IMG/VR virus record: IMGVR_UViG_3300032675_000001
Span: 186,001 to 250,000 of that record
Length of the DNA stretch: 64,000 nt
Reading direction: 5' to 3' (one strand)
This document shows, piece by piece, positions 791 to 59,983 of this stretch; the first letter of the stretch is position 1; every line of letters starts with the position of its first letter. The translations under genes and the position numbers were made by a program. Under the pieces are notes generated by a model, which had not been told where the DNA came from, ran no database searches, and was given only the letters and a program-made list of their open reading frames with translations.

Positions 791-3700
791 ATGAGTACAA
801 AAAACTTTAACGTTAAAAACGGACTTACAGTAGGTGTTGCAAATATTGATGCCACAACTGGTAATACATATATTGGTAACTTAGTCACCAGTGGTCAGGC
901 GAATCTTGCTTCATTGGTTGTTCCCGGCACTTCAAATCTGGGTCCGATTGGTAATGTTACGATAACTGGTGGTTCATCTGGGTATTATCTTCAAACCAAT
1001 GGATCAGGTGGTCTTTCTTGGGCATCAGTTCCTACTGGCACTGGCATTTCTAATGGCAACTCCAATGTTAATATTCCTGTTGCCAACGGAAACGTAAACA
1101 TTTCGTCTGCTGGTAACGCTAATATTGTAGTAGTTACGGGCACTGGTGCAAACGTTAATGGATCATTAACAGTAAGTGGTGTTAGTAACTTAGGGCCAGT
1201 CAGTAACGTTGTTATCACAGGTGGTACATCAGGATACTATCTACAAACCAATGGATCAGGTGTTCTTTCTTGGCAACCCATTTCAGTTGGCACTGCACTC
1301 CAGAATGGTAATTCAAATGTTACTGTAACTGCTAACTCAAATGTCAATACTTCTGTTGCGGGTGTTGCTAACGTATTCGTAGTAACGAGTACCGGAGCAA
1401 ACCTGACAGGCACATTTAACACCACAGGTAATGCTAACGTAGGTAATTTGGGAACAGCCGGATTAATCACCGCAACAGGTAACGTCACTGGCGGCAACCT
1501 GACCACTGGTGGTATAGTTTCTGCAACAGGTAACGTCACTGGTGGAAACTTGACTACTGGCGGTATAGTTTCTGCAACAGGTAACGTCACTGGCGGCAAT
1601 ATTACTACTGCTGGACAGCTTGTTTCATCTGTTTCAACTGGTACTGCCCCACTTGTCGTTACATCAACAACACAGGTAGCAAACTTGAATGTCGCTACAG
1701 CCGGTACTGCAAGCAATGCTGGAAACGTTCAGGCCAACACCTCAACAAGTTCTACGGTATATTTAACTGGCACAACAAGTGCTACGAACGCATACGTTTC
1801 TTTGAACTTCGTATCTGGCATTTATGCCAATATGAGCAACAACTCAATTACTGCAACTCAGTTTGTTGGTACTCACATCGGTAACGTACAGGCCACTGGT
1901 GCAAATGGTACGGTATTCGCAAACAATGTAACTATATCAGGTGCAGCAGGTGGAAACAGTAACGTTTCTACTGTAACCGGTAACTTGGGCTTAAGAACTA
2001 TTGCTGCCACTTACACTGATACTACTGCTACATCAACTTCAACTATTGCTAATGCAGCTATCCATGCTATCGGCACTCCTACTTTGGCAGCAGCAAATAC
2101 TGCTATAACTGCAACTAATGCTGCCACATTCTACATTCAGGGTGCACCAGTAGCAACTGGTAACATGTCAATAACTAACCCATATGCATTGTTTGTGGGT
2201 GGTGGAAACAGCTATTTTGCTGGCGGCGCAAACATTATAGGTAATGCTAACGCAGGTAACATAGGCGCTGCAACTGGTGTGTTCTCTACAGCCGTCAACA
2301 CTGGCCTAGTTCAAAACGGCACTTCAAATATTACAATAGCATCTGGTGCAAACGTATCAACATTCATTGGTGGTAACTCAACTGCACAGATGGTAGTTAC
2401 ATCAACCGGCGTAAACGTTGCTGGATATACTACAGTTGCTGGAAATATCACTACAAGTGCTAACTTGATCACAAGTAATATTACAAGCACTGGTGCACTT
2501 ACGATCACATCTGGTGGCACTAATACCAATATTAACATTGCACCAATTGGTACTGGTAACATTACTGCAAATAATACTAACATCAATAACCTAAAAGACC
2601 CTGTACAGGCACAAGATGCTGCAACCAAGAACTATGTAGATACCACTGCACAAGGTCTTGATGTAAAGCAGGCAGTTGTAGTTGCAACTGCTACAACTCT
2701 TCCTTCGTATACGTATAATAATGGTTCAAGTGGTGTTGGTGCAACTCTTACTGCAACCACAAATGGCGCACTGTCTATAGATGGTGTTGCAGTTACTGTA
2801 AATTCTCGTGTTCTTATTAAGAATGAAGTAAGTGGAAACGCACCATATAATGGTATCTATAGTGTTACACAAACCGGTAATGCATCTGCTGTTTATATTC
2901 TAACACGTACCGCAGACTTTGATCTAAGCTCACCAAGCTCTGAAATTCCGGGTGCTTTCGTATTTGTAAACTCTGGTACAGTTAATCAGAATACAGGTTG
3001 GGTATGTACCACTACTTCACCCGTAACAGTAGGTACTACAGCAATCACGTTCACCCAGTTCTCAGGTGCTGGTACTTACACTGCTGGTACAGGGTTGACA
3101 CTTACTGGTTCTGTATTCAGTATCACTAACACTGCCGTCACAGCAGGAAGTTATGGTGGCGCATCTCAGGTTCCAACATTTACTGTGAACCAGCAAGGTC
3201 AGCTAACCGCAGCATCTAACGTAGCCGTTGTTGCTCCTGCTGGCACATTGTCTGGAACTACACTTAACTCAACTGTTGTCACATCAAGCTTGACTAGCGT
3301 TGGTACACTTGGAACATTGACTGTATCTGGTAATGCTAACGTTGGTAACATTGGCGCAACAGCAGGTGTGTTTACTGGTGCAGTTACCGGTGCAGCAAAT
3401 ATAACTGGTGCTAACTTAATTGCAAATACTGGCATATTTGCAGGAAACACTGCTTCCGGTAATATATTTATTGGATACGATAGTGCAAATTTAGCACTTG
3501 GAGAATTTGCAGGCAACGTTAACACTTACATTCAAGTGGCATTGTTTAATTCTAACGTAGGAAATCAAGCATCTGCTGACTTTGCTATTTACGATACTAA
3601 TGGTCCAACAAGTGTAACTAACAATTATATTGACATTGGTATTCTTGGTAACACATATAGCAATACATCTTGGACTATCAACGGCCCATCGGATGGTTAC

Positions 3701-5227
3701 GTATACACCGGTAATACCAATCTCTCAGTAGGTACTGCTGCTTCTAAATATATTAACTTCTTCACTGGAGGCACGTTAGCTGCTAATGAGCGTATGCGTA
3801 TTGATGCTAACGGCAATGTTGGCATTGGTAATACTTCTCCTACGAACAATCTTTCTGTTGCAGGTACGGCATTTATTTCTGGAAACGCTAACGTAGGTAA
3901 TATTGGTGCAACAAACGCTAACGTTACTGCTATAACCGTTTCTGCGAACGCCAATGTTGGTAACTTGGGTACTACTGGATTAATTACCGCAACAGGTAAC
4001 GTCACTGGTGGAAACTTGACTACTGGTGGTCTTGTATCAGCAACAGGTAACGTCACTGGTGGTAACTTGACAACTGGTGGTCTTGTATCAGCAACAGGTA
4101 ATGTCACTGGTGGAAACTTGACCACTAGTGGTCTAGCAAGCACAGGGTCACTTGTTGTTTCTGGAACTTCAAACCTAGGCCCAGTTGGCAATGTTACAAT
4201 AACTGGCGGTACAGCAGGTTATTACCTCCAAACAAACGGATCGGGTGTTCTCTCGTGGCAACCAATCTCTGCTGGATCAGCACTCGTAAGTGGTAATTCA
4301 AATGTCACTGTTGCTGCTAACGCAAACGTAAACATCAGTTCAAACGGTGTAGCTAACGTATTTGTAGTAACAAACACTGGCGTTAACGTTGCCGGTACAC
4401 TAAACGCAACTGGCAATGCTAACGTAGCTAACTTGGGCGTAACTAGTAACATAACTGTTGCCAACTTGACTGTATCCACATTCAGTAATTTGGGATCAAA
4501 CGCCAACGTTGTCATCACTGGTGGTACCAATGGTCAGTATCTACAAACAAATGGTTCTGGTGGACTTTCTTGGGCTACTATTAGTACAGCAGGCGTATCC
4601 AACGGAACTTCAAATATCAGTATTCCAGCAGTTAATGGAAACGTAAATACTTCTGTTGCTGGTAATGCTAACGTATTTGTGGTAACTGGCACTGGCGTAA
4701 ACGTTGCCGGAACGTTGAACGCAACTGGCAATGCTAACGTTGGTAATATTGGCGCTAACAACGCAGTATTTACTTTGGTAACTGGCACTTTAACAACTGC
4801 TGCACAACCAAATATTACTTCTGTTGGTACGCTAACATCATTGAATGTTAACGGCAATGCGAGCGCAAATTATTCTCTGTTAAGTGGAGGTATTGTATCT
4901 AATCGTACAAACGTAGCTGTAACCACTACTGCAACTGTAATTGATCAGTTCCCTCCTGCAACATTTAGAGTCGCCAAGTATATCATTATGGCATCTGGAA
5001 CTAATGGCTATCAAGCAAGCGAAATCTTGTTAGTGCAGGATGGTTCAAATGCATACATAACAGTATATGCTGATGTTATTTCCAATGCCACACCGGGTTC
5101 AGATGTCATTGATATTTCTGCAAATATCAACGGGGTATCTGGTAACGTCACATTGTATGCAGCAGCAAACGCAACTTTTGGTACAACTGCTAATGTTAAC
5201 GTAGTTCCATTGTACTTGAAACCATAA
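791..5227 (+). CDS. Long tail fibre protein, Gly/Asn/Thr/Val-rich (1478 aa)
   Basis: Recurrent YLQTNGSGxLSW and NGNSNV modules, ATGNVTGGNLTTGG repeats, and DAATKNYVD and ERMRIDANGNVGIG motifs typical of phage fibres. Confidence 0.8.
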   Translation: MSTKNFNVKNGLTVGVANIDATTGNTYIGNLVTSGQANLASLVVPGTSNLGPIGNVTITGGSSGYYLQTNGSGGLSWASVPTGTGISNGNSNVNIPVANGNVNISSAGNANIVVVTGTGANVNGSLTVSGVSNLGPVSNVVITGGTSGYYLQTNGSGVLSWQPISVGTALQNGNSNVTVTANSNVNTSVAGVANVFVVTSTGANLTGTFNTTGNANVGNLGTAGLITATGNVTGGNLTTGGIVSATGNVTGGNLTTGGIVSATGNVTGGNITTAGQLVSSVSTGTAPLVVTSTTQVANLNVATAGTASNAGNVQANTSTSSTVYLTGTTSATNAYVSLNFVSGIYANMSNNSITATQFVGTHIGNVQATGANGTVFANNVTISGAAGGNSNVSTVTGNLGLRTIAATYTDTTATSTSTIANAAIHAIGTPTLAAANTAITATNAATFYIQGAPVATGNMSITNPYALFVGGGNSYFAGGANIIGNANAGNIGAATGVFSTAVNTGLVQNGTSNITIASGANVSTFIGGNSTAQMVVTSTGVNVAGYTTVAGNITTSANLITSNITSTGALTITSGGTNTNINIAPIGTGNITANNTNINNLKDPVQAQDAATKNYVDTTAQGLDVKQAVVVATATTLPSYTYNNGSSGVGATLTATTNGALSIDGVAVTVNSRVLIKNEVSGNAPYNGIYSVTQTGNASAVYILTRTADFDLSSPSSEIPGAFVFVNSGTVNQNTGWVCTTTSPVTVGTTAITFTQFSGAGTYTAGTGLTLTGSVFSITNTAVTAGSYGGASQVPTFTVNQQGQLTAASNVAVVAPAGTLSGTTLNSTVVTSSLTSVGTLGTLTVSGNANVGNIGATAGVFTGAVTGAANITGANLIANTGIFAGNTASGNIFIGYDSANLALGEFAGNVNTYIQVALFNSNVGNQASADFAIYDTNGPTSVTNNYIDIGILGNTYSNTSWTINGPSDGYVYTGNTNLSVGTAASKYINFFTGGTLAANERMRIDANGNVGIGNTSPTNNLSVAGTAFISGNANVGNIGATNANVTAITVSANANVGNLGTTGLITATGNVTGGNLTTGGLVSATGNVTGGNLTTGGLVSATGNVTGGNLTTSGLASTGSLVVSGTSNLGPVGNVTITGGTAGYYLQTNGSGVLSWQPISAGSALVSGNSNVTVAANANVNISSNGVANVFVVTNTGVNVAGTLNATGNANVANLGVTSNITVANLTVSTFSNLGSNANVVITGGTNGQYLQTNGSGGLSWATISTAGVSNGTSNISIPAVNGNVNTSVAGNANVFVVTGTGVNVAGTLNATGNANVGNIGANNAVFTLVTGTLTTAAQPNITSVGTLTSLNVNGNASANYSLLSGGIVSNRTNVAVTTTATVIDQFPPATFRVAKYIIMASGTNGYQASEILLVQDGSNAYITVYADVISNATPGSDVIDISANINGVSGNVTLYAAANATFGTTANVNVVPLYLKP

Positions 5228-5303: not shown

Positions 5304-7634
5304 GTGACGACAAAAAATTTTACCGTTAAAAACGGACTTACAATAGGTGTCGCAAATATTGATGCCACAACAGGTAATGCTAATCTTGGTAACTTAGTTA
5401 CCAGTGGTCAGGCGAATCTTGCTTCATTGGTTGTTCCCGGCACTTCAAACTTAGGTTCAGTCGGTAACATCACAATAACTGGTGGTACATCAGGATACTA
5501 TCTCCAAACAAATGGGTCAGGTGGGCTTTCTTGGCAACCCATTTCAGTTGGTACTGCACTCCAGAATGGTAACTCAAATGTTACTGTAACTGCTAACTCA
5601 AATGTCAATACTTCTGTTGCTGGTGTTGCTAACGTATTTGTAGTAACAAGTACTGGGGTCAATGTCGCTGGAACTTTAAATGCAACAGGTAATGCTAACA
5701 CCGGTAACATCGGTGCAACATTTGGTGTATTTACTAACGTAAGCGGTAATGGTTCTACCCTATCATCTATAAATGGAGCAAATGTAACCGGTACTGTAGC
5801 TAACGCAACGTATGCAACGAGTGCTGGCTCCGCCACTAGTGCAACTACTGCTGGTACGGTAACCACAAATGCACAACCAAACATCACATCTGTTGGCACA
5901 CTGACTTCACTTGCTGTTACTGGAAATACAACTTCAAATAATTTTGTTGCAAGTACTACTAATATAGTTACTTCAAATGCAGTAACTATTCCTTCAGGAA
6001 CTGCCGTGGTATACGCCAGCCAGCAAGGAGGAAGAACTTATATTTCATACGATATGAACACATATCCTTCCTTGTACGAAGCAAGATTTGTCAATATCGG
6101 TACTAGTACTAATGTTCCAACTGGGGCTACCGGTGATGGTTATTGGTTTGGTATGGGAGCAGGAGATGTTGCCAGTAGGGGATATGATTTATTTGGTACT
6201 TCTGGAAATCAGTTCTTTGCTAGATCACGAGAAAATGGAAACGCAGGATGGATACAGCTAGCAAGTAACGTTAGCGGTACGGTATTAACTGCTAGTACAG
6301 TAACAACTAATGCCCAACCGAATATCACTAGTGCTACTAACTTAACAAGTATTGGTGCATTGGGTTCATTGACGGTTACTGGAAACGCCACTGTTGGTAA
6401 CTTGATAGGTCCTCACGCAAATGGAAACTCAAACGTAAGTATTCCTGTTGCCAATGGAAACATCAATTTAACAGCGGGCGGCAACGTAACACTAGTTGTT
6501 ACGCCGACCAATGTTAGCGTAACAGGAAGTACTGCTACTGTAATAGCAGACTCGGCTGCTACCGCCGATTCGGTTCTAATTTTAGAAGTAAAGAATGGTA
6601 CTCAAAATTTGGGTGTTATGGCTAATGCAAGTGCTGGTAGCTATAATCCATTGGTGGGTGTAAATGATATAACATTAGTAGGATCAAATAATTCTACCGG
6701 TGGTGAAGGTAATGTCAATATAAGTATAGTACCATGGTCAACTGGTTCAGGTGGTATTCGTATAATAACTACTAGCAACGTAACAACTGGCATAAACCTT
6801 GTAGCATCAACTACTACTATAACAGGTGTTGCAAACGTTACGGGAAATTTAAATGGTAGTAACATAGCCGCAGCTAATGGGACATTTGCTACTATAACTG
6901 GTACTACATTATCTTTTACTACAGTAAGTGGCACTACAGTAAATGCCGCCACACTAACTGGAGTTTTAACAACTAATGCACAGCCAAATATCACATCAGT
7001 AGGCACACTAACTTCATTATCGGTAACAGGTAATGCTAATGTTGGTAATTTGGGCACTACTGGACAGTTAATTTCAACAGTTGCAACTGGTACCGCTCCT
7101 TTAGTAGTATCTTCAACTACTCAAGTAAATAACCTAAATAGTCAGTATTTGAATGGTTTTACTTGGGCAATTCCTGCTGGTATAGGAACTACTACACCAA
7201 ACAGCGGTTCATTCACTACTCTAACGACAAGCGGTCTTACAACCCACAATGCTAACGTTGCAATGGGCAACAACTACATTACTTCACCAATCTTCAGTTG
7301 CTATAAAGAATATGTGAGTGCAATAACTATAAGTGGTTCTACGCAAACATTAGACTTATCTACCACTAACATTTTCAACATAACACTGACAGCAAATACT
7401 ACCCTATCGTTCATTAATCCACCTGCTGCTGGTATAGCTTACAGTTTCATGATATATTGTAAACAATACAATGTCGGAGGAAATACGATTACTTGGCCAT
7501 CATCAGTCAAGTTTCCAAATGGTTCTACTCCCTCATTGACTACCACTCAGAACTATATTGATATTCTGAATTTTTTCACACTTGATGGTGGTGTTACTTA
7601 TATTGGTGCACTATCACTGGCTAACGTTGCATAA
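5304..7634 (+). CDS. Tail fibre protein paralog (776 aa)
   Basis: N-terminus nearly identical to the 791 gene; AQPNITSVGTL repeats; C-terminal ITWPSSVKFP..DIL.F domain. Confidence 0.78.
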   Translation: MTTKNFTVKNGLTIGVANIDATTGNANLGNLVTSGQANLASLVVPGTSNLGSVGNITITGGTSGYYLQTNGSGGLSWQPISVGTALQNGNSNVTVTANSNVNTSVAGVANVFVVTSTGVNVAGTLNATGNANTGNIGATFGVFTNVSGNGSTLSSINGANVTGTVANATYATSAGSATSATTAGTVTTNAQPNITSVGTLTSLAVTGNTTSNNFVASTTNIVTSNAVTIPSGTAVVYASQQGGRTYISYDMNTYPSLYEARFVNIGTSTNVPTGATGDGYWFGMGAGDVASRGYDLFGTSGNQFFARSRENGNAGWIQLASNVSGTVLTASTVTTNAQPNITSATNLTSIGALGSLTVTGNATVGNLIGPHANGNSNVSIPVANGNINLTAGGNVTLVVTPTNVSVTGSTATVIADSAATADSVLILEVKNGTQNLGVMANASAGSYNPLVGVNDITLVGSNNSTGGEGNVNISIVPWSTGSGGIRIITTSNVTTGINLVASTTTITGVANVTGNLNGSNIAAANGTFATITGTTLSFTTVSGTTVNAATLTGVLTTNAQPNITSVGTLTSLSVTGNANVGNLGTTGQLISTVATGTAPLVVSSTTQVNNLNSQYLNGFTWAIPAGIGTTTPNSGSFTTLTTSGLTTHNANVAMGNNYITSPIFSCYKEYVSAITISGSTQTLDLSTTNIFNITLTANTTLSFINPPAAGIAYSFMIYCKQYNVGGNTITWPSSVKFPNGSTPSLTTTQNYIDILNFFTLDGGVTYIGALSLANVA

Positions 7635-30379: not shown

Positions 30380-30454
30380 GCGTCTGAGGTTGAGTGGCAT
30401 CACACGGGTCTCTAAAGCTCAGGATAGCGGGTTCGAATCCTGCCAGACGCGCCA
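30380..30454 (+). tRNA. Amber suppressor tRNA (anticodon CTA)
   Basis: Acceptor GCGTCTG/CAGACGC plus GCCA; T arm GCGGG-TTCGAAT-CCTGC; loop CT-CTA-AA in a wobble-rich CGGGT/GCTCA stem. Confidence 0.75.
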
Positions 30455-33600: not shown

Positions 33601-34452
33601 ATGATGTATAATAGTAAGCTGGTCGCCAGCATCAAAGCCAACGGAAAAGTACTCCGTGAATTCAAAGATACCGTTTATATTCCATTCGGTTCTGAATACT
33701 CAATCCTACTAAAGAATCTCAACACAGTTAGAGCAAATATCAACATCTATATTGATGGCGATAACATTGTTCCCGGTGGACTCGTCCTCAATGCTGGACA
33801 AGAGATTGATCTTCAACGTGCCATTCGCAATGGAAACATGAATGAAGGCAACCGTTTCAAGTTCATTGAACGTACAGGCAAGATTGAAGACCATCGTGGT
33901 ATCAAGCTGGAAGACGGTTTGATCCGAGTAGAATATCAGTTTGAAAAGGTATTCAAGCGTCAGGATGGTATCTATTGGAACAACTACATAACTTGGACTG
34001 CACCGTCGCAACCACACTACGGTGATCCAAGTTGGCAAATTCTACGTTCAACTGGTGGAGGCACTGCAACTCCATCTTGGATGACAGGAACCACAACTTG
34101 TGGTGGTGATGGACTTGGTACAACCTATGCCGCAGTTAACAACATGGCTGTTGGTGCTACACTGACTGCAAGTTCTGCACAGGCATTCAATGCTGCTCCT
34201 CAGACTGAAACAGGAATCACTGTTCCGGGTAGCAAGAGCGATCAGAAGTTTGTAACAGTCAGTGATTTCGTATGTGAACCAGAAAAGCACAATATCATTC
34301 TCAAGTTGCTTGGTGAAACTCCTGACAACGAAGTAGTACGTAAGCCAATCACTGTTAAAGCTAAGCCAAAGTGTGTGACTTGTGGTAAGCAAAACAAAGC
34401 AGCATCCAAGTTTTGTTCAGAATGCGGAACTGCACTAGAAATTTTTGCATAA
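33601..34452 (+). CDS. Conserved phage protein with C-terminal zinc ribbon
   Basis: CVTCG...FCSECG. Confidence 0.7.
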   Translation: MMYNSKLVASIKANGKVLREFKDTVYIPFGSEYSILLKNLNTVRANINIYIDGDNIVPGGLVLNAGQEIDLQRAIRNGNMNEGNRFKFIERTGKIEDHRGIKLEDGLIRVEYQFEKVFKRQDGIYWNNYITWTAPSQPHYGDPSWQILRSTGGGTATPSWMTGTTTCGGDGLGTTYAAVNNMAVGATLTASSAQAFNAAPQTETGITVPGSKSDQKFVTVSDFVCEPEKHNIILKLLGETPDNEVVRKPITVKAKPKCVTCGKQNKAASKFCSECGTALEIFA

Positions 34453-34506
34453 AACTGCTTGACAGCCTAAGGTCTCCTTGTTATATGATTTGTGTAACAA
34501 GGAGAC

Positions 34507-34821
34507 ATGAAGATGAGCAAAGGTAAGTACAGCCCGGCACTGACCCGTAAAATGATCGCTGCGTGGGATGATGACACTTTCATCTATAATGCTGACAAGC
34601 AGATTCCTCCCCTGACTTGGGATTTCGGTGAGTATAGCTCTCGGGTTCATTTGGCTAACCATGACAAGGACGGCTTTGATAGCTATGGCTACAGCGCCTT
34701 TGATGCTGACGGCAATTATGTTGGCATTGGTGATGGTGTTGATCGTTACGGCTACACTGAAATGGACTACCTCGCTATGAGCGATGATGAGTTTGAATCC
34801 ATCTGCATCTACGGAGCTTGA
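34507..34821 (+). CDS. Hypothetical early protein
   Basis: Promoter at 34459; AAGGAG RBS; DGFDSYGY repeats. Confidence 0.65.
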   Translation: MKMSKGKYSPALTRKMIAAWDDDTFIYNADKQIPPLTWDFGEYSSRVHLANHDKDGFDSYGYSAFDADGNYVGIGDGVDRYGYTEMDYLAMSDDEFESICIYGA

Positions 34822-35030
34822 TCATGAATCCGAATCGCAAACTCAAGCAAGAAGTTTATATTCGTATTTGTCAGGACTCTGGGTGGCAGCTTGATTATAT
34901 TGAGGCTGCTAAGTTGGCAGGTAAGGTTCTCACCTGCCACCCGTTTGAAGTTTATAATGCATTTGGCGATATGAGCAATATGCAGAAGGTAGCAACTGGC
35001 GAACATCCTGCCTGCAATCGGAAGGTATAA
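34818..35030 (+). CDS. Hypothetical protein
   Basis: Coupled ORF. Confidence 0.55.
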   Translation: MIMNPNRKLKQEVYIRICQDSGWQLDYIEAAKLAGKVLTCHPFEVYNAFGDMSNMQKVATGEHPACNRKV

Positions 35031-35142
35031 AATGGGCAACAGGGTGAAGGAAATTCTTGACTTCACCCTGTTATTCGTGTATAAATAGACTTGTAGAGGG
35101 ATAGACCTTCTATATAAAATCGCTAACAAGGAGTTTGTAGCA

Positions 35143-36252
35143 ATGGAAGATAAAGAGTTTGACCTATTGGTCTTTGTGGGCCGGTTTCAGCCCTTTCACA
35201 ATGAACATAAGCGTGTCATTGACATCGCACTTCAAAAATCCCGACATGTATTGATTCTCGTAGGTTCGGCAGGTAAGGCCCGCACGATCCGCAATCCGTT
35301 CACCTTTGATGAGCGTCGGCAGATGATTCAGAATTCATTCAATGACGAATTCAAGCATCAAATTGCGTATCGTGATGAATATGCAGATGCTTTGAGTAAG
35401 CGTATTATCATCAAACCTCTTTATGACAAGACCTACAACGATGCTGCTTGGATCAAGCAGGTTCAGGAACTCGTCAAGGATACTACGCTTGACGTAATGA
35501 ATCCTAGCGGGTTCATGGCATCTGGCTACAATGATGCAAAGGTCGGACTGATTGGTGCCAGCAAGGATGGCTCAAGCTACTATCTCAAGCTGTTTCCGCA
35601 ATGGAAGTCGGTGAATGTTGAGATTGAAGCTGACGTTCATGCTACTACCATTCGTGAAGCGTTTCTAGATTCTCCTCCGGTCTGGGTGCTGAAAAACATC
35701 GGCAAAACTGTTCCTAATAGCGTGATGAAATTTTTGATTGATTTTTCTGTAACGGAAGAATACACTACCCTTCACCGAGAACTACTATTCGTCCGCAGCT
35801 ACAAGAAGCAGTGGGAAGTTGCACCCTATCCTCCTATTTTTGTTACCACAGATGCCCTAGTTACTTGTTCTGGACATATTCTTCTAGTTGAACGCAAGGC
35901 GGAACCGGGTAAAGGTATGCTTGCTCTTCCCGGAGGATTTTTGAATCAAGATGAAAAGATCATTGATGGTACTATTCGTGAACTGCGTGAAGAAACCAAG
36001 ATCAAAGTCCCAGAACCAGTTCTTCGGGGTAATATTGTTCGCACTGATGTTTTTGATGATCCTCACCGGTCCTCTCGCGGCAGGACGATCACACATTGTT
36101 CTTTAATTCAGCTTCCTAATGCAGTTGAATTACCTAAGGTTAAAGGATCGGACGATGCGCGAACCGCAGGGTGGTATAAACTCGGTGATCTTGATGAATC
36201 CATGTTGTTTGAGGATCATTGGCATATTATTCAATACCAACTCGGCCTTTAA
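35143..36252 (+). CDS. nadM: Bifunctional NMN adenylyltransferase / Nudix ADP-ribose pyrophosphatase
   Basis: GRFQPFHNEH, NPFT..ER, HATTIR; Nudix GGF..RELREET, GSDDA. Confidence 0.93.
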   Translation: MEDKEFDLLVFVGRFQPFHNEHKRVIDIALQKSRHVLILVGSAGKARTIRNPFTFDERRQMIQNSFNDEFKHQIAYRDEYADALSKRIIIKPLYDKTYNDAAWIKQVQELVKDTTLDVMNPSGFMASGYNDAKVGLIGASKDGSSYYLKLFPQWKSVNVEIEADVHATTIREAFLDSPPVWVLKNIGKTVPNSVMKFLIDFSVTEEYTTLHRELLFVRSYKKQWEVAPYPPIFVTTDALVTCSGHILLVERKAEPGKGMLALPGGFLNQDEKIIDGTIRELREETKIKVPEPVLRGNIVRTDVFDDPHRSSRGRTITHCSLIQLPNAVELPKVKGSDDARTAGWYKLGDLDESMLFEDHWHIIQYQLGL

Positions 36253-36284
36253 TTAGTGTATTGATGAATAAGAGGGCTTTGATC

Positions 36285-36470
36285 ATGGAAGATAATGAAG
36301 TAGGCGGACATAAGTTTCCGGTCCAACTTGGAGAAGTTATTATGAGTGCTATTAATGCTCTACCAGAGGAAGAATATGCAAATGGCAGAACAGCGGCTTA
36401 TTGGCATATTATGGGCGTTCTTGATCGGCATCTTGTAAGGAATCACAATTCTACTGTTGAGGGACTTTGA
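36285..36470 (+). CDS. Hypothetical protein
   Basis: Small ORF in the operon. Confidence 0.45.
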   Translation: MEDNEVGGHKFPVQLGEVIMSAINALPEEEYANGRTAAYWHIMGVLDRHLVRNHNSTVEGL

Positions 36471-36964
36471 TTATGCTTAATCACATTAAAGGCAATCTCA
36501 TTGACCTTGCTGAGCAGGGTGAATTTGATGTTATCGTGCATGGGGCGAACTGCCAAAATGTTATGGGGAGTGGTATTGCCAAAGAGATTCGCGCACGATA
36601 TCCTCAAGTATATGAAGCCGATACTATTGCCACCAAGCAATGGAAAAATCCTGTTGCAAAGTTAGGAAACTTTAGTACATATGCTACTTATGGTAAGCCA
36701 AGTGATAGTGAACACCCTTTTATCATTGTAAACGCTTACACCCAGTTGCACTATCTGCCTCGTGGAGTTGATCATTTTGAGTATGAAAGCTTCTATCTCA
36801 TCTTGAAGAAGCTAGCGGTACTTGGTGGAGTTCGTTTCGGCTTCCCACTAATTGGATGCGGGTTAGCAGGCGGTGATAAGGATCGTATCATTGCCATGCT
36901 GGAAGACTTTGCTGAAAAGGTTTCTGCTAAGGGTGGGGCTGTCACTCTTGTGGAATTCGGTTGA
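36467..36964 (+). CDS. Macro domain (ADP-ribose binding/hydrolase) protein
   Basis: KGNL, VHGANC..MGSGIA, NAYTQ, FPLIGCGLAGG. Confidence 0.88.
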   Translation: MIMLNHIKGNLIDLAEQGEFDVIVHGANCQNVMGSGIAKEIRARYPQVYEADTIATKQWKNPVAKLGNFSTYATYGKPSDSEHPFIIVNAYTQLHYLPRGVDHFEYESFYLILKKLAVLGGVRFGFPLIGCGLAGGDKDRIIAMLEDFAEKVSAKGGAVTLVEFG

Positions 36965-36971
36965 GGTTATT

Positions 36972-37172
36972 ATGATTGAACTAGATGATTTTCCAAAATG
37001 GGAAAGGTTTGGAATTCACAACGACCTTCCCGTATATAAAGTATACACATCTGAAATTCGCAGTTGGGTAGAATCGCAGTCAGAGAAGTTGTGGAAACCC
37101 TATATGTATGGTTATGTAGATTATGTTTTTACTAAAGAACTTGAAATGCTATTCCTATTGAGGTGGTCATAA
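36972..37172 (+). CDS. Hypothetical protein
   Basis: GAGG RBS; ends in FLLRWS, a frequent phage small-protein tail. Confidence 0.55.
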   Translation: MIELDDFPKWERFGIHNDLPVYKVYTSEIRSWVESQSEKLWKPYMYGYVDYVFTKELEMLFLLRWS

Positions 37173-37230
37173 ACTGTAGTTTTTGATTACAAAGTATAAA
37201 TACTGTCATATTAATCAGTATGAGGTATTT

Positions 37231-37989
37231 ATGGACTACACAAAGTTATACGAGTTGTTGATAGAAACAAGGAGAAGTAAAGGAATTCCAGAAGGCTATA
37301 AAGAGGTTCATCATATTGTCCCTAGAAGTTTCGGGGGAAGTGATGATCCAGAAAACTTAGTGGTCTTGACTGCACGGGAACATTTTGTTGCTCATAGACT
37401 ATTAGCCAAGATGTATCCTAACTCAGGCATGGTTCACGCAGTATATAAGATGGCTTGCTCTAACCTCACTATGAAACGATTCAAAGTTACGAGTAGAGTA
37501 TATGAACATTTGCGTAGTGCCCATGCCCATAGAGTTTCTACCGACGAAGTTGCTAAGATGAAGAAGTCGCTTGCTGGTAAAGGAAAGAAGCAAAGTGAAG
37601 ATCATATTAAAGCAAGGACTGAAAGTAGAAAGCAGAACGGAAAATCTTGGTTAAGTGATGAAGCTAAACGAAATATGTCTAAACCAAGAATCAAAGTTAG
37701 CTCAAGGAAAGGACGAAAGTTTAGCACACCGGAAGAACTTGCAGGTATTGCCAAGATGGTGGAAGCTAGGAAACAGAATGGATCATATGCTTGGACAGAG
37801 GAACAGAAACTAGCACAAAGTCTCAGATTCACTGGGAAGAAAAAGAACACGAAACCATTAACTGACGATCAAAAACAAAGGTTAAGGCAAGAAAAAACAA
37901 AACCAGTTACTTGTCCGCATTGTGGAAAAGTAGGAGCAATGATGGTTATGCCTAGATGGCATTTTGACAATTGCAAAAATAAAAGTTGA
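37231..37989 (+). mobile_element. Free-standing HNH homing endonuclease with NUMOD3-like repeats
   Basis: EVHHIVPRSFGGSDDPENLVVLTAREHFVAH; C-terminal CPHCGK..RWHFDNC. Confidence 0.88.
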
Positions 37990-38071
37990 CAAATCAATTC
38001 GGGTTTGTTATACTCACAAATGCAAAGGCGATAGACGTCGAAGCACATTGTTAATAAAAGGAGTTTTTATT

Positions 38072-39436
38072 ATGACACAACACAACATTTGCCTGAATGC
38101 AGATTCTTACAAGTACTCAATGTATGTGCAATACCCTCCTAACACGACTGGCATTTACAGCTACATTGAAAGTCGCGGCGGCGTTCACAGTTCTACTGTG
38201 TTCTTCGGCTTGCAGGCATTCATCAAGGAATATCTTTGTGCTCCAATCACGCAAGAAATGATTGACGAAGCCGAAGCTATTATCCTTGCACACGGAGAAC
38301 CTTTCAATCGTGAAGGTTGGGAATACATTCTGCGTGAACATGATGGCTATCTGCCTGTTCGCATCAAGGCAGTGCCTGAAGGTACTGTTGTTCCTGTCAA
38401 GAATGTTCTCGCTACTATTGAGAACACTGATCCCAACTGCTACTGGCTGACCAGCTTCCTTGAAACTGCGCTGCTTCGTGCAATTTGGTATCCTACAACT
38501 GTTGCTACCAACAGCTACGAAAACAAGAAATTGATTCTTGAATATTTGGAGAAGACTGGTGACCCTACTACTATTGATTTCAAGCTACACGATTTTGGTG
38601 CTCGTGGGGTATCGAGCCTTGAGAGTGCTGGCATCGGAGGCGCTGCCCACTTGGTTAACTTCATGGGAACAGACACGGTTGAGGCTCTTCTGTTTGCTCG
38701 TCGTTACTATAATGCTGATATGGCAGGGTTTAGCGTACCTGCTATGGAACACAGCACTGTAACTAGCTGGGGTCGCGAATACGAAGTTGATTCGTATCGC
38801 AACATGGTCAAGAAAAACGGCAAGCCCGGTGGCATTGTTTCGGCAGTATCGGATAGCTATGACATCTTCAAGGCTTGCGAACTGTGGGGTACGGAACTCA
38901 AGCAGGATGTGCTTGATAGTGGTGCTACTCTTGTTGTTCGTCCTGATTCGGGCGATCCGGCCGATGTGGTTAGTAAGTGCTTGAAGATTCTTGACAAGTA
39001 CTTTGGTCACACTGTCAATGACAAGGGCTTCAAGGTCCTGAACAATGTTCGTGTGTTGCAGGGCGATGGTATCAATCACGCAAGCATTCGCAGCATTCTC
39101 TACACTATCACGCTTGCTGGCTACAGTGCTGACAACGTGGTGTTTGGTCAGGGTGGTGCATTGCTCCAGATTGTGAACCGCGATGATCAAAAATTCGCTC
39201 TTAAGTGCAGTGCTGCATTAGTTAATGATCAATGGGTTAACGTATTTAAAGACCCTATCACTGATCAAGGCAAACAAAGCAAGAAAGGTCGCGTAACCCT
39301 TTACCAAGATTCGGATGGAAAATACTTTACCGATATTGAGGGGAAGGGCGAGTCAGTACTAGTAACCGTTTTTGAGAACGGTCACTTGATTACTGAACAC
39401 ACATTTGATGATATCAGGAAACGAGCTTCGCTCTAA
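38072..39436 (+). CDS. nadV: Nicotinamide phosphoribosyltransferase
   Basis: DSYK, LHDFGARG, AMEHS, VSDSYD, RPDSGDP, QGDG, KDPITD..K.SKKG. Confidence 0.95.
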   Translation: MTQHNICLNADSYKYSMYVQYPPNTTGIYSYIESRGGVHSSTVFFGLQAFIKEYLCAPITQEMIDEAEAIILAHGEPFNREGWEYILREHDGYLPVRIKAVPEGTVVPVKNVLATIENTDPNCYWLTSFLETALLRAIWYPTTVATNSYENKKLILEYLEKTGDPTTIDFKLHDFGARGVSSLESAGIGGAAHLVNFMGTDTVEALLFARRYYNADMAGFSVPAMEHSTVTSWGREYEVDSYRNMVKKNGKPGGIVSAVSDSYDIFKACELWGTELKQDVLDSGATLVVRPDSGDPADVVSKCLKILDKYFGHTVNDKGFKVLNNVRVLQGDGINHASIRSILYTITLAGYSADNVVFGQGGALLQIVNRDDQKFALKCSAALVNDQWVNVFKDPITDQGKQSKKGRVTLYQDSDGKYFTDIEGKGESVLVTVFENGHLITEHTFDDIRKRASL

Positions 39437-40418
39437 TACCTACAATTTCTTTAGTTATCCATCTAGGGTCATCTTTTTCTACCCTTCCAACTGACTTGCC
39501 CGTTCTAGAGCATTTTGCAATAATAGTGTTTTTAGAACGGGCAATTATTTCTCCAGTACCCCATCTTGGATCATTCCTGTGAATATTTCCCAGAGATTCA
39601 CGGGTTTTTGAATCTTTGGCGGGTATGAAGTCTTTAGACATACTGATGATTTCTCCAGTTTTCCATCTCGGGTCTGTTACGGATATTCTTCCTAATGGCA
39701 TATTAGTTGTGGCATCAATTGCAGGAGCATTTTTAGAATTCACATGTTTAATGGTTCCATTTATGTAGTCTGGGTCATTGCGTGAAATCATACCATTTTT
39801 GGTAGCAACGAATTCGGAAAAGAGCGGAGACCCTATTATTTCTCCAGTTTTCCAGCGCGAGTCTGTTACAGCAATTCTTCCAATACATTTCTTTGTAACA
39901 GGATCATATGCTGTTCCGTAACCATTACTGGTGCTTTTCAACTTTCCTGAAAGATATGTTGGATTAGTTTTTTCTGTTTGAAATGTCTTTCCGTTTTCAT
40001 CGCGAACTGCGAGCTTGCCTTTTGTATTTCCTTGAATTTCTCCAGTTTTAACTCTTTCGTCTTCACAGTCAACCCACACTAAGTTACCATTATGATCAAT
40101 TCCGCAGAAATGTCCAGTTGTATCAAATTTAGAATTACCATACGCTCTATTGAGCCATTTTTGGTCGTGTATTACATTCAGTTTGCGTTGAACTTTATCC
40201 TCCCACTGTCTGGAAGCTAATACATTGTTAAAGATTTTTCTAACTTGGATAACATCGGGGTGTCCGTTATCTTCTATAAACTGTTTGACAATTGGACTTG
40301 AAGTAAAGTATGTGGTCCATAGATCAGATGGGTGGCAGTTTTTGGCGTATCGCACACCATAGTACCATTTGTTGAGATTGGTCCACCCGATAAGATATGT
40401 AAATGGAGTATGTTGCAT
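39414..40418 (-). mobile_element. Seg-like GIY-YIG homing endonuclease with repeated C-terminal modules
   Basis: PFTYLIGW...YYGVR..YFTSS; about 7 D(P)RWxTGEI-like repeats. Confidence 0.8.
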
Positions 40419-40524
40419 TTTTATCCCTTTTGAAAGTTTGCTATGATTATTTATCTTTTCTCTTGACATTCCGATCAACTTAGTGTAATGTGAAAACATG
40501 ATGAACGAACACACAGGAGTTAAG

Positions 40525-48703: not shown

Positions 48704-48936
48704 GAATGAATAAAATCTATCGGGTGGTCAAGCTAAGGGCGTGAGCGTGGCACTGGCAAGACCTGAAATAGAGTAGCGGACCCTCCCTAGCACCGTGACT
48801 CTTCCCTACGATAGACTGTTTAGATGAACCCTGTTGACGTAATTGTGCAGTGGTAGCTCGTCCGTTAATTCGGTGGTCCTAGCGCAGGTTCGAATCCTGT
48901 ACGAAGGGTACGACTTTATATAAAGAAAGGAAGATC

Positions 48937-49176
48937 ATGTTCTATGAAAAGTGTGCCGAGTTACTCGGTGCGACATATGAATGTGAATCTTTCCCTTATC
49001 GCTATCGTACTCGCTGGAACAATCGTTCTCCGGGCAACGGTAGGTTTGAGGGCTTTGGAATAATCAGAAAGTTTGGTGATAACTATCAAGTGGCGTTAAC
49101 TCGTCCGATATCGCATCATGCTATCTATCATTCCGAAGAAGAAGTATTCGCATTCCTGAGAAGTTTATCTCAATGA
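48937..49176 (+). CDS. Hypothetical protein
   Basis: AAGGA RBS; TRWNNR.PGNGR motif. Confidence 0.6.
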   Translation: MFYEKCAELLGATYECESFPYRYRTRWNNRSPGNGRFEGFGIIRKFGDNYQVALTRPISHHAIYHSEEEVFAFLRSLSQ

Positions 49177-49267
49177 TAGACTTATTAGATGAACACTGTT
49201 AGTCTGATAAACTCATAGAGCTAGAAGGGCGACAGCAAGAGAAACAGTGTTCTTCTAATAAGTTTAT

Positions 49268-55988: not shown

Positions 55989-56066
55989 TATTCATGAAAA
56001 ACTACAGGTTATATATCTGTAGTTTTTCTTTTTGTGATAAATATATAACTATTCTTTACGGAAGAA

Positions 56067-59211: not shown

Positions 59212-59482
59212 TACATGACAGTATAGCTTATATGGGATAGGTCGTAAGTTCGAGTCTTCCCGAAAGCACCATTTTAAAGAATGCGACAGCCCTCTATACC
59301 CATGAACCCAGTCGCGAGGGTAGGTAATGACATGGTGATAGTGCATCAACTGCGAGGGACTAGGGGTGGAGATTGAACCCTAATCTGGGTGGGAGTCCCG
59401 GAAACAAAAATATTAAATGGTTAAATGCATTTATTTGATGTTCTTATGCGATGAAGCATAAATAGTAGTAGGAGATACTACT

Positions 59483-59983
59483 ATGAAATGTCTATATTGT
59501 GATAGAGAAATAGCAAACAAAGGGTCATTGACTGCCCACCAAATGAGTTGCCACAAAAACCCTAATAGGGTGATACATAAACGTTCACCACTTGCCGGGC
59601 ATAAAAAAGGGAATCCATCCCGATTAAAAGGAATAAAAAAGACAGATGAAGTGATCGCTAGAACCATTGCTATAGTAGAGTCTGGCGGACTACCATTACT
59701 TTCTGAAGTTTCCAGCCGCAAACATGCAAAGAGATATTTAATACATACGAAGGGTCACAAATGTAGTGTATGTGAAATAACTGAATGGATGGGTAAACCA
59801 GTTCCTTTAGTTTGTGACCATATATCTGGTGATAGTACTGACAATAGAATTGAAAACTTTAGATTAGTTTGTTGCAACTGTGATGCTCAACTTCCGACAT
59901 TTAAGAGTAAGAACAGAGGCAACGGAAGATATTATGATAGAGAATATAGACAGAAAAAATCTGCAGAGAGAACTAACACATAA
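59483..59983 (+). mobile_element. HNH homing endonuclease with N-terminal zinc finger
   Basis: CLYC...H...C; CSVC; DHISGD..DN...N.RLVCCNC. Confidence 0.85.

Follow-up and report, generated by a model that had tools for sequence, protein, structure and literature searches.

Analysis of the two NAD-rebuilding genes of this giant lake phage reveals that nadM and nadV are each preceded by the same small two-hairpin leader. The leader recurs, with its first loop kept and its stems changed in step, before the same two genes in dozens of other phages and in a few bacteria. It is most likely a translational operator shared by the two genes of the NAD+ reconstitution pathway NARP2. However, regulation itself is inferred, since there is no experimental or transcript evidence and only DNA lake-metagenome runs hold this sequence. 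The stretch analysed (hereafter the window) comprises 64,000 nucleotides of the 360,683-bp phage genome, and the positions of the features are collected below.

Features of the nadM and nadV leaders and neighbouring genes (window coordinates)
Position	Strand	Feature	Details and basis
35057..35085	+	Sigma-70-like promoter of nadM	TTGACT, 17 nt, TATAAA; also reads TATAAATA; read from the sequence; TTGAC-N17-TATAAAT(A) conserved in related nadM leaders
35092..35114	+	Hairpin 1, nadM leader	T35092-G35100 pairs with C35106-A35114, 9 bp of which 2 are G-U; pentaloop AUAGA (35101-35105) closed by G35100-C35106; -9.1 kcal/mol
35122..35141	+	Hairpin 2, nadM leader	GCUAACAA pairs with UUUGUAGC; Shine-Dalgarno GGAG (35130-35133) in pentaloop GGAGU; AUG follows 1 nt later
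35143..36252	+	nadM	Bifunctional NMN adenylyltransferase / Nudix ADP-ribose pyrophosphatase, 369 aa; Pfam CTP_transf_like and NUDIX
36473..36964	+	Macro-domain protein	Pfam Macro, on ORF 36467-36964; no motif of its own
37986..38014	+	Sigma-70-like promoter of nadV	TTGACA, 17 nt, TG-TATACT; 11 of 12 consensus positions; promoter scan; conserved as TTGACA in most related nadV leaders
38021..38045	+	Hairpin 1, nadV leader	TGC 38021-38023 pairs with GCA 38043-38045 and GGCG 38027-38030 with CGTC 38036-38039, separated by a 3x3 internal loop (AAA/GAA); pentaloop AUAGA (38031-38035) closed by G38030-C38036
38052..38072	+	Hairpin 2, nadV leader	8 A-U pairs, consecutive and in register, around pentaloop GGAGU (Shine-Dalgarno 38060-38063); 3' arm runs into the AUG
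38072..39436	+	nadV	Nicotinamide phosphoribosyltransferase, 454 aa; Pfam NAMPT_N and NAPRTase

In both leaders GATAGAC lies 14-15 nt after a sigma-70-like -10 box, although the promoter scan listed only the promoter of nadV, and exactly 21 nt before AAGGAGTTT. Folding shows that both copies of hairpin 1 are the minimum-free-energy fold, with z = -3.1 (nadM) and -2.0 (nadV) against shuffles. The outer-stem and internal-loop layout of the nadV hairpin recurs in relatives such as those labelled L012, L016 and L017. The bare word GATAGAC is not enriched in the window (9 found against 5.7 expected, and 18 of 100 shuffles reach 9), and within one window the coincidence is only suggestive. However, the structured motif (covariance model R1) scores 30.1 bits in the nadM leader and 24.0 bits in the nadV leader and nothing else in the window is significant. 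In the whole phage genome, the two-hairpin model gives 45.9 and 39.8 bits at these two sites while the next best hit is 20.7 bits.

The first-pass annotation had described the hairpin with the loop G-ATAGA-C correctly and had proposed a common cis-regulatory RNA or protein-binding element that co-regulates the two NAD genes. Two results that would have contradicted this proposal, namely absence of the motif from homologous leaders or its equal frequency before unrelated genes, were looked for and neither was obtained, so that the proposal is supported. Three features had been missed: the second hairpin which holds the Shine-Dalgarno sequence, the occurrence of the motif in bacteria, and the freedom of position 2 of the loop.

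Homologous leaders keep the motif. We found it in at least 43-48 of 76 assessable viral nadV loci, in all eight viral nadM loci fetched by protein, in four cultured phages (Synechococcus phages B23 and BUCT-ZZ01, Xanthomonas phages LucasX and RTH11) and in several bacterial nadM-nadV loci. In total, 65 distinct nadV or nadM leaders carry it, from uncultured phages, the four cultured phages and a few Gammaproteobacteria such as Hahella ganghwensis. These 65 were collected without any pairing filter, and in 31 of them all 6 inner positions pair, whereas other GATAGAC words have a mode of 2 of 6. The motif is rare in the bacteria sampled, as only Hahella ganghwensis was positive among 150 Gammaproteobacteria (class sample) and 150 genomes of Hahella's order, although the stricter filters used there lose weak matches. 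Some related modules lack the ANAGA loop: L026 has no hairpin 1, while RsoM2USA and L038 have a hairpin 1 with a different loop. The element is therefore dispensable or replaceable.

Covariation of hairpin 1 was measured over 46 aligned hairpins. Paired cells amount to 81.6% against 49.5% in shuffles, and the covariation score is 0.794 against 0.197 (0 of 500 shuffles reach it), with slid controls giving at most 0.195. All four Watson-Crick pair types occur at stem positions. Hairpin 2, measured over 59 distinct leaders which were not selected for pairing, gives 82.3% against 52.3% and 0.757 against 0.192, with slid controls at most 0.275. The sequences are related, however, so the shuffle statistics overstate independence. 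RNAalifold on 34 full leaders predicts both hairpins on its own, with compensatory changes at 11 of 14 pairs. Interestingly, hairpin 2 is not a generic feature of the ribosome-binding sites of this phage, as only 4 of 44 GGAG-type sites in the window have such a hairpin.

Whole-genome scans of six phage genomes, including this one, and of one bacterial MAG rank the nadM and nadV leaders first. Across 680 kb of viral loci there are 70 hits, all on the gene strand and all at nadV or nadM leaders. It should be noted that the covariance models were trained on the same leaders they re-find. Extra weak hits in genomes G001 and G003, in two bacterial genomes and in the 150-genome class sample lie in coding sequence or are terminator-like hairpins, and we treat them as chance. 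The element is sometimes intercistronic: LucasX has the motif in the 60-nt nadM-nadV gap, and Hahella is similar.

Taken in order, the element consists of hairpin 1, whose stem is of free sequence (4-11 bp, sometimes with an internal loop) and whose pentaloop is A-N-A-G-A, usually AUAGA, closed by G-C; an A/U-rich linker of about 8-14 nt; hairpin 2, which presents the Shine-Dalgarno GGAG in a pentaloop GGAGU closed by A-U; and the start codon, which follows by 0-5 nt. We read it as a structured part of the mRNA and not of the DNA. This reading rests on covariation, orientation and position, since the strand test comparing G-U with A-C mismatches was not significant (22 against 15, p = 0.32). 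In the most likely model, a shared trans-acting partner, as yet unidentified, would recognise the loop of hairpin 1, 29-45 nt before the AUG, and would change how readily the ribosome can use the Shine-Dalgarno sequence held in hairpin 2. The two enzymes, NadV and NadM-Nudix, which act on the nicotinamide-to-NMN-to-NAD+ route, would then be made in step.

The motif travels with the two genes through unrelated phages (T4-like cyanophages, Xanthomonas jumbo phages and this lake jumbo phage) and into some Gammaproteobacteria. The partner should therefore be either something encoded by the cassette itself, with autogenous control by NadM-Nudix or NadV, or something universal such as an NAD-related metabolite or the ribosome. 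We favour a protein over a small ligand. Such control would resemble that of iron-responsive elements bound by IRP1/aconitase and of the thrS leader bound by threonyl-tRNA synthetase, where a short hairpin with a fixed loop and a free stem lies at a constrained distance upstream of the start in mRNAs of functionally linked genes, and a pathway enzyme binds it and blocks initiation. However, the loop sequence is unrelated (CAGUGN in iron-responsive elements, anticodon-like in thrS) and nothing shows that NadM or NadV binds RNA. NadM proteins from motif-bearing loci, aligned with those from motif-lacking loci, show no distinguishing insertion. Loop variants in the two leaders of one genome gave a mixed picture, agreeing in BUCT-ZZ01, L030 and L103 but not in L021, L107 and L109.

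NARP2 is one of the pathways by which phages rebuild NAD+ after NAD-depleting immune systems destroy it, and it is reported to be costly, as it consumes PRPP, overproduces NAD+ and is toxic on cloning (bioRxiv 10.1101/2024.02.11.579819). A dedicated, deeply conserved RNA control element on both genes would mean that expression of the pathway is tuned, and would add a post-transcriptional layer to bacterial NAD salvage beside the NrtR repressor. It is possible, though doubtful on present evidence, that the leader is a sensor of the NAD status of the cell, either as a minimal riboswitch or as an operator bound by NadM-Nudix or NadV in a ligand-dependent way. The phage would then switch NARP2 on when host immunity such as Thoeris, SIR2 or DSR breaks NAD+ down and off otherwise, avoiding the PRPP cost. 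This would be the first cis-acting RNA control of a phage counter-defence pathway, shared with bacterial nadM-nadV operons. No earlier description of the motif was found in the literature searched, which did not include most subscription journals, and the element is a clean candidate for a new Rfam family. Culturable systems include Xanthomonas phages LucasX and RTH11, Synechococcus phage BUCT-ZZ01 on S. elongatus PCC 7942, Synechococcus phage B23, Hahella ganghwensis DSM 17046 and Microbulbifer taiwanensis.

Among the alternatives, a very small riboswitch, in which the two hairpins, perhaps with the A-rich linker, bind NAD+, NMN, ADP-ribose, nicotinamide or PRPP directly and binding changes access to the Shine-Dalgarno sequence, survives best but appears unlikely. 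The motif keeps its form in hosts as distant as cyanobacteria and Gammaproteobacteria, which fits a universal ligand, it is strictly tied to one pathway, and feedback control would make sense for a costly pathway. The layout, with free stems, fixed loops, a Shine-Dalgarno sequence in the second hairpin and a variable linker, is reminiscent of the guanidine-II (mini-ykkC) riboswitch, which also acts on translation through the Shine-Dalgarno region. However, mini-ykkC has two identical ACGR tetraloops that pair with each other around the ligand, whereas the loops ANAGA and GGAGU have at most 2 complementary positions and cannot pair. Only about 5-7 nucleotides outside the Shine-Dalgarno sequence are conserved, with no conserved bulge, junction or linker position, and hairpin 1 is stable on its own. 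No conserved alternative pairing was found. Six contiguous pairs between loop 1 and the bases just before the AUG occur in 16 of 38 nadV leaders against 1 of 186 control ribosome-binding sites, but nadM and the GC-rich bacterial leaders show only 3-5 weak pairs, and variant loops show no compensatory change. Such a pseudoknot is therefore kept as a possibility for a subset and not as the mechanism. A scan of window positions 34000-40000 against all 4227 Rfam families at E up to 10 gave only three chance snoRNA-like hits, none at the leaders. The NAD+-I (nadA motif) and NAD+-II (pnuC motif) riboswitches, which are also cis-acting leaders before NAD biosynthesis or salvage genes, thus do not match, and their architecture (internal-loop aptamers, a pseudoknot) and genes (nadA, pnuC) are different.

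Less likely still is a factor-independent leader, in which hairpin 1 protects the 5' end or insulates the cistron and hairpin 2 sets a fixed translation efficiency. In the phage leaders hairpin 1 begins within a few nucleotides of the predicted transcription start, as 5' stabiliser hairpins do, and RsoM2USA and L038 keep the Shine-Dalgarno hairpin together with their different loop. However, a stabiliser needs no particular loop, whereas here A, A, G and A of the loop are kept across NadV proteins only 53-60% identical and across GC contents from about 20% to 66%, while every stem position changes. The motif is also found inside operons, far from any 5' end, and no other gene in six phage genomes uses it.

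A DNA operator bound by a transcription factor such as host NrtR, the ADP-ribose-responsive repressor of NAD genes, is close to refuted. The hairpin is an inverted repeat close to promoters of NAD genes, NrtR is encoded divergently from nadM in four of the bacterial loci, and NrtR sites are palindromes with a central spacer of about 7 bp (PMC2330246, PMC6800001). However, NrtR operators of 21-23 bp have conserved arms and a non-conserved centre (core GT-N7-AC; for example GTTTTCGA-N7-TCGAAAAC), whereas in our aligned hairpins the arms are free and the asymmetric 7-nt centre is invariant or nearly so. All instances have the same orientation relative to the gene, the distance is fixed to the start codon, and there are intercistronic copies. 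In the bacterial loci a separate palindrome with conserved arms, TAGTGGC-N5-GCCACTA, lies upstream of the hairpin and is the obvious NrtR box. The NrtR winged-helix domain (PF21906) is absent from five phage genomes, while control genomes gave hits. Chance resemblance of two short hairpins is refuted by conservation in homologous leaders.

Other known leader signals were also compared. CsrA/RsmA dual sites have an upstream hairpin and a second one showing the Shine-Dalgarno GGA in its loop, about 10-20 nt apart, and hairpin 2 (A-A-GGA-G in the loop) looks like a CsrA site. However, hairpin 1 has AGA in all 65 leaders where CsrA needs GGA, and PF02599 is absent from the phage genomes. Neither hairpin was called by the terminator scan, and hairpin 1 is followed by an A-rich linker and not by a run of U. 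The Macro-domain gene between nadM and nadV belongs to the NAD/ADP-ribose module, and in most relatives the nadV promoter directly follows its stop codon. Lambda-type nut boxB hairpins also lie just after an early promoter, with a purine-rich pentaloop recognised by sequence and a free stem, but their loops are GNRA-like (GAAAA, GAAGA or GACAA), and they are phage-specific and act on transcription antitermination over long operons. In contrast, this motif sits before two particular genes, also occurs in bacteria and is tied to the start codon, although this comparison did not include a search for an N protein. The CGCUAACAA-like stretch after hairpin 1 of nadM is the covarying 5' arm of hairpin 2, not a boxA.

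The genome to which the window (bases 186001-250000) belongs is a complete phage genome of 360,683 bp with terminal repeats. The window comes from lake-water metagenomes, has a G+C content of 42% and carries 35 tRNA genes downstream of the region of interest. Gene order in this region, together with the other features discussed below, is listed in the table. NadV plus NadM-Nudix constitute the nicotinamide-to-NMN-to-NAD+ route, which in phages is called NARP2 and is a counter-measure against NAD-depleting immunity. In most relatives the nadV promoter directly abuts the Macro gene, whereas here an HNH homing endonuclease is inserted between the Macro module and the nadV promoter; the same insertion is seen in two of the related loci, L001 and L016. 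One of the tRNAs called by ARAGORN has the anticodon CUA and is labelled Pyl, which would make it an amber-suppressor-like tRNA. It overlaps the start of an ORF and stands apart from the main array of 34 tRNAs at 44.3-62.3 kb.

Coordinates of the features in the window and in the compared loci (handles beginning with L denote the compared loci)
Sequence	Position	Strand	Feature
Window	30380-30454		tRNA, anticodon CUA (labelled Pyl); overlaps the start of an ORF at 30394
Window	35038-35072		12-bp inverted repeat (AACAGGGTGAAG, 11 nt, CTTCACCCTGTT)
Window	35143-36252		NadM-Nudix
Window			Small ORF
Window	36473-36964		Macro-domain protein
Window			Small ORF
Window	37222-37989		HNH homing endonuclease
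Window	38072-39436		NadV (nicotinamide phosphoribosyltransferase)
Window	39414-40514	-	ORF with GIY-YIG- and HNH-like matches, directly after nadV
Window	48810-48835		First copy of a 26-nt direct repeat (88% identical) beginning with GATAGAC
Window	49175-49200		Second copy of the direct repeat; one arm of a long inverted repeat with its partner near 49240-49265
Window	55993-56031	-	Terminator-like hairpin (CTACAG...CTGTAG followed by TTTTT) inside the plus-strand tRNA array
Window	59461-59485		Shine-Dalgarno hairpin of the HNH endonuclease gene at 59483 (8 flanking pairs)
L145	1560-1735		Palindrome TAGTGGC-N5-GCCA(CTA), nrtR-nadM intergenic region, Gammaproteobacteria
L107	1660-1690		As for L145
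L109	1655-1680		As for L145
L103	1555-1580		As for L145
L042 (viral contig)	2528-2790		Complete two-hairpin leader preceding a 54-codon ORF
L088 (Ralstonia phage RsoM2USA)	about 262-346 and 5898-5982		nadM and nadV leaders with an unrelated first loop
L038	about 3930-3990		Leader with an unrelated first loop

Both hairpins described in the first-pass annotation, one in the leader of each NAD gene, are correctly placed and are the minimum-free-energy folds. Each of them follows a sigma-70-like promoter by 14-15 nt and precedes AAGGAGTTT by exactly 21 nt. However, the word GATAGAC is not enriched in the window, with 9 copies found against 5.7 expected, and the other seven copies have no flanking stem and no leader context. 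A 26-nt direct repeat beginning with the same word lies in the tRNA region. Within one window, the resemblance of the two leaders is therefore only a suggestive coincidence.

For comparison, we retrieved 79 viral loci encoding NadV relatives and 8 encoding NadM relatives. GATAGAC, or a close variant, is situated 18-26 nt before the ribosome-binding site of nadV in at least 43-48 of 76 assessable loci, and it also precedes nadM in all eight loci retrieved by NadM. The flanking arms differ from locus to locus but remain complementary. An ungapped alignment of 46 distinct hairpins reveals that 81.6% of cells are paired, against 49.5% after shuffling, with a covariation score of 0.794 against 0.197 (0 of 500 shuffles reach it) and at most 0.195 when the 3' partner is slid by 1-3 columns. 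All four Watson-Crick pair types occur at stem positions. The sequences are, however, phylogenetically related. Because this set had been filtered for pairing, the collection was repeated using position only, which gave 65 distinct leaders (38 nadV and 27 nadM). All 6 inner positions pair in 31 of these and at least 4 pair in 53, while other GATAGAC words have a mode of 2 of 6. Position 2 of the loop tolerates all four bases (AUAGA, AAAGA, ACAGA and AGAGA), and nadV of the Xanthomonas phage RTH11 has GUAGA. The core is therefore A-N-A-G-A. The closing pair is G-C, occasionally A-U or C-G, and in a few leaders it is unpaired (G-A or A-A).

Interestingly, a second hairpin belongs to the motif. 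In every leader the Shine-Dalgarno sequence sits in a pentaloop, usually GGAGU, which is closed by an invariant A-U pair, and the 3' arm of the stem ends 0-5 nt before the start codon. This helix covaries as strongly as the first (82.3% against 52.3% paired, and 0.757 against 0.192). These sequences were not selected for pairing. RNAalifold analysis of 34 full-length leaders predicts both helices without guidance, and 11 of its 14 pairs show compensatory changes. The second hairpin is not a habit of this phage, as only 4 of 44 GGAG-type ribosome-binding sites in the window have it and two of those four are the NAD genes. Apart from these, an HNH endonuclease gene is the only other gene in the window whose Shine-Dalgarno GGAG sits in a strong hairpin loop, and it has no ANAGA hairpin upstream.

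A covariance model of the first hairpin (R1) finds only the two leaders in the window and in the whole genome, and a model of both hairpins (R2) scores them 45.9 and 39.8 bits, with the next hit at 20.7 bits. Covariance-model E-values are rough, and the models were trained on the leaders they recover. In five further whole phage records the top hits are again the nadM and nadV leaders, and the two extra weak hits that we inspected lie in coding sequence. A terminator-like hairpin in the tRNA array of the window was also picked up as a weak covariance-model hit. Across 680 kb of viral loci, all 70 hits are on the gene strand and at these leaders. In the viral contig L042, the complete two-hairpin leader precedes a 54-codon ORF and nadM starts only about 200 nt further on, which may reflect an insertion between leader and gene, or a small gene on the other strand.

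Among cultured phages, the motif is present before both genes in Synechococcus phage B23, Synechococcus phage BUCT-ZZ01 (with the loop GAAAGAC) and Xanthomonas phage LucasX, and it is also present in Xanthomonas phage RTH11. It was not found in RsoM2USA, ACP17, Mx1 or nt-1. However, the nadM and nadV leaders of RsoM2USA and of the locus L038 keep a first hairpin and the hairpin with the Shine-Dalgarno sequence in its loop, but with unrelated first loops, suggesting that the first loop can be exchanged while the layout is kept. The motif also occurs before nadV and/or nadM in Hahella ganghwensis, Microbulbifer taiwanensis and several gammaproteobacterial MAGs, and loop variants occur in Pokkaliibacter and Methylomonas. 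In one 3.7-Mb MAG the two best genome-wide hits are the nadM and nadV leaders. Nevertheless, the motif is rare in bacteria: none of two samples of 150 genomes, surveyed with strict filters, had it apart from Hahella ganghwensis itself. Rhodobacteraceae nadV leaders (loci L135, L138, L139, L140 and L142) have a different conserved leader, in which a hairpin CUGCGG-GAGGU-CCGCAG is followed by a second hairpin containing the Shine-Dalgarno sequence. This looks like an analogous two-hairpin layout with a different first loop.

Several features point to an RNA element acting on translation. The conservation pattern, with free arms around a fixed asymmetric centre, is that of an RNA hairpin and the reverse of a protein-bound DNA palindrome. 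All instances are in the sense orientation, and the distance from the loop to the start codon is 29-45 nt (median 34). In LucasX the motif fills the 60-nt gap between nadM and nadV, starting about 10 nt after the nadM stop codon, and in Hahella it is likewise intercistronic. A promoter inside the nadM coding sequence is not excluded, but the position of the element follows the start codon rather than a promoter. Moreover, in four bacterial loci NrtR is encoded divergently from nadM, and a palindrome with conserved arms, TAGTGGC-N5-GCCACTA, present in two copies in Hahella, lies upstream of the hairpin and is separate from it. This palindrome is presumably the NrtR operator of this lineage, whereas the NrtR DNA-binding domain is absent from five phage genomes.

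The motif is thus a structured, pathway-specific leader whose second helix contains the ribosome-binding site, from which we infer translational control in the absence of transcript or binding data. The only conserved information outside the Shine-Dalgarno sequence is a terminal pentaloop and its closing pair, which is typical of protein-binding hairpins such as IRE, boxB, phage coat-protein operators and the thrS operator. Because the motif accompanies the two genes across unrelated phages and hosts, the simplest protein partner is one of the two enzymes. However, NadM shows no motif-linked insertion, and nothing else supports this directly. A minimal riboswitch, for which guanidine-II is a precedent with two loop-conserved hairpins, remains possible, but no conserved pocket-like positions or switching helices were found. 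A pseudoknot between the loop and the bases preceding the AUG is plausible only for a subset of nadV leaders.

No Rfam family matches the element, and no description of it was found in the literature searched, including the NARP2 papers, the NrtR papers and riboswitch-discovery surveys. We class it as a new family among the cis-acting leader RNA operators. It is tentatively possible that it is a genuine NAD-status sensor for a phage counter-defence pathway, which gives it above-average interest. A 12-bp inverted repeat is also present upstream of nadM, where it starts 8 nt after the stop codon of the upstream ORF and encloses the -35 box of the nadM promoter. No U-run follows this repeat, and it could be an end-of-transcript hairpin or a second regulatory element. 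Interestingly, it is conserved in related nadM leaders and shows a compensatory change in the loci L083/L001 (CAGGG to CCGGG, matched by CCCTG to CCCGG).
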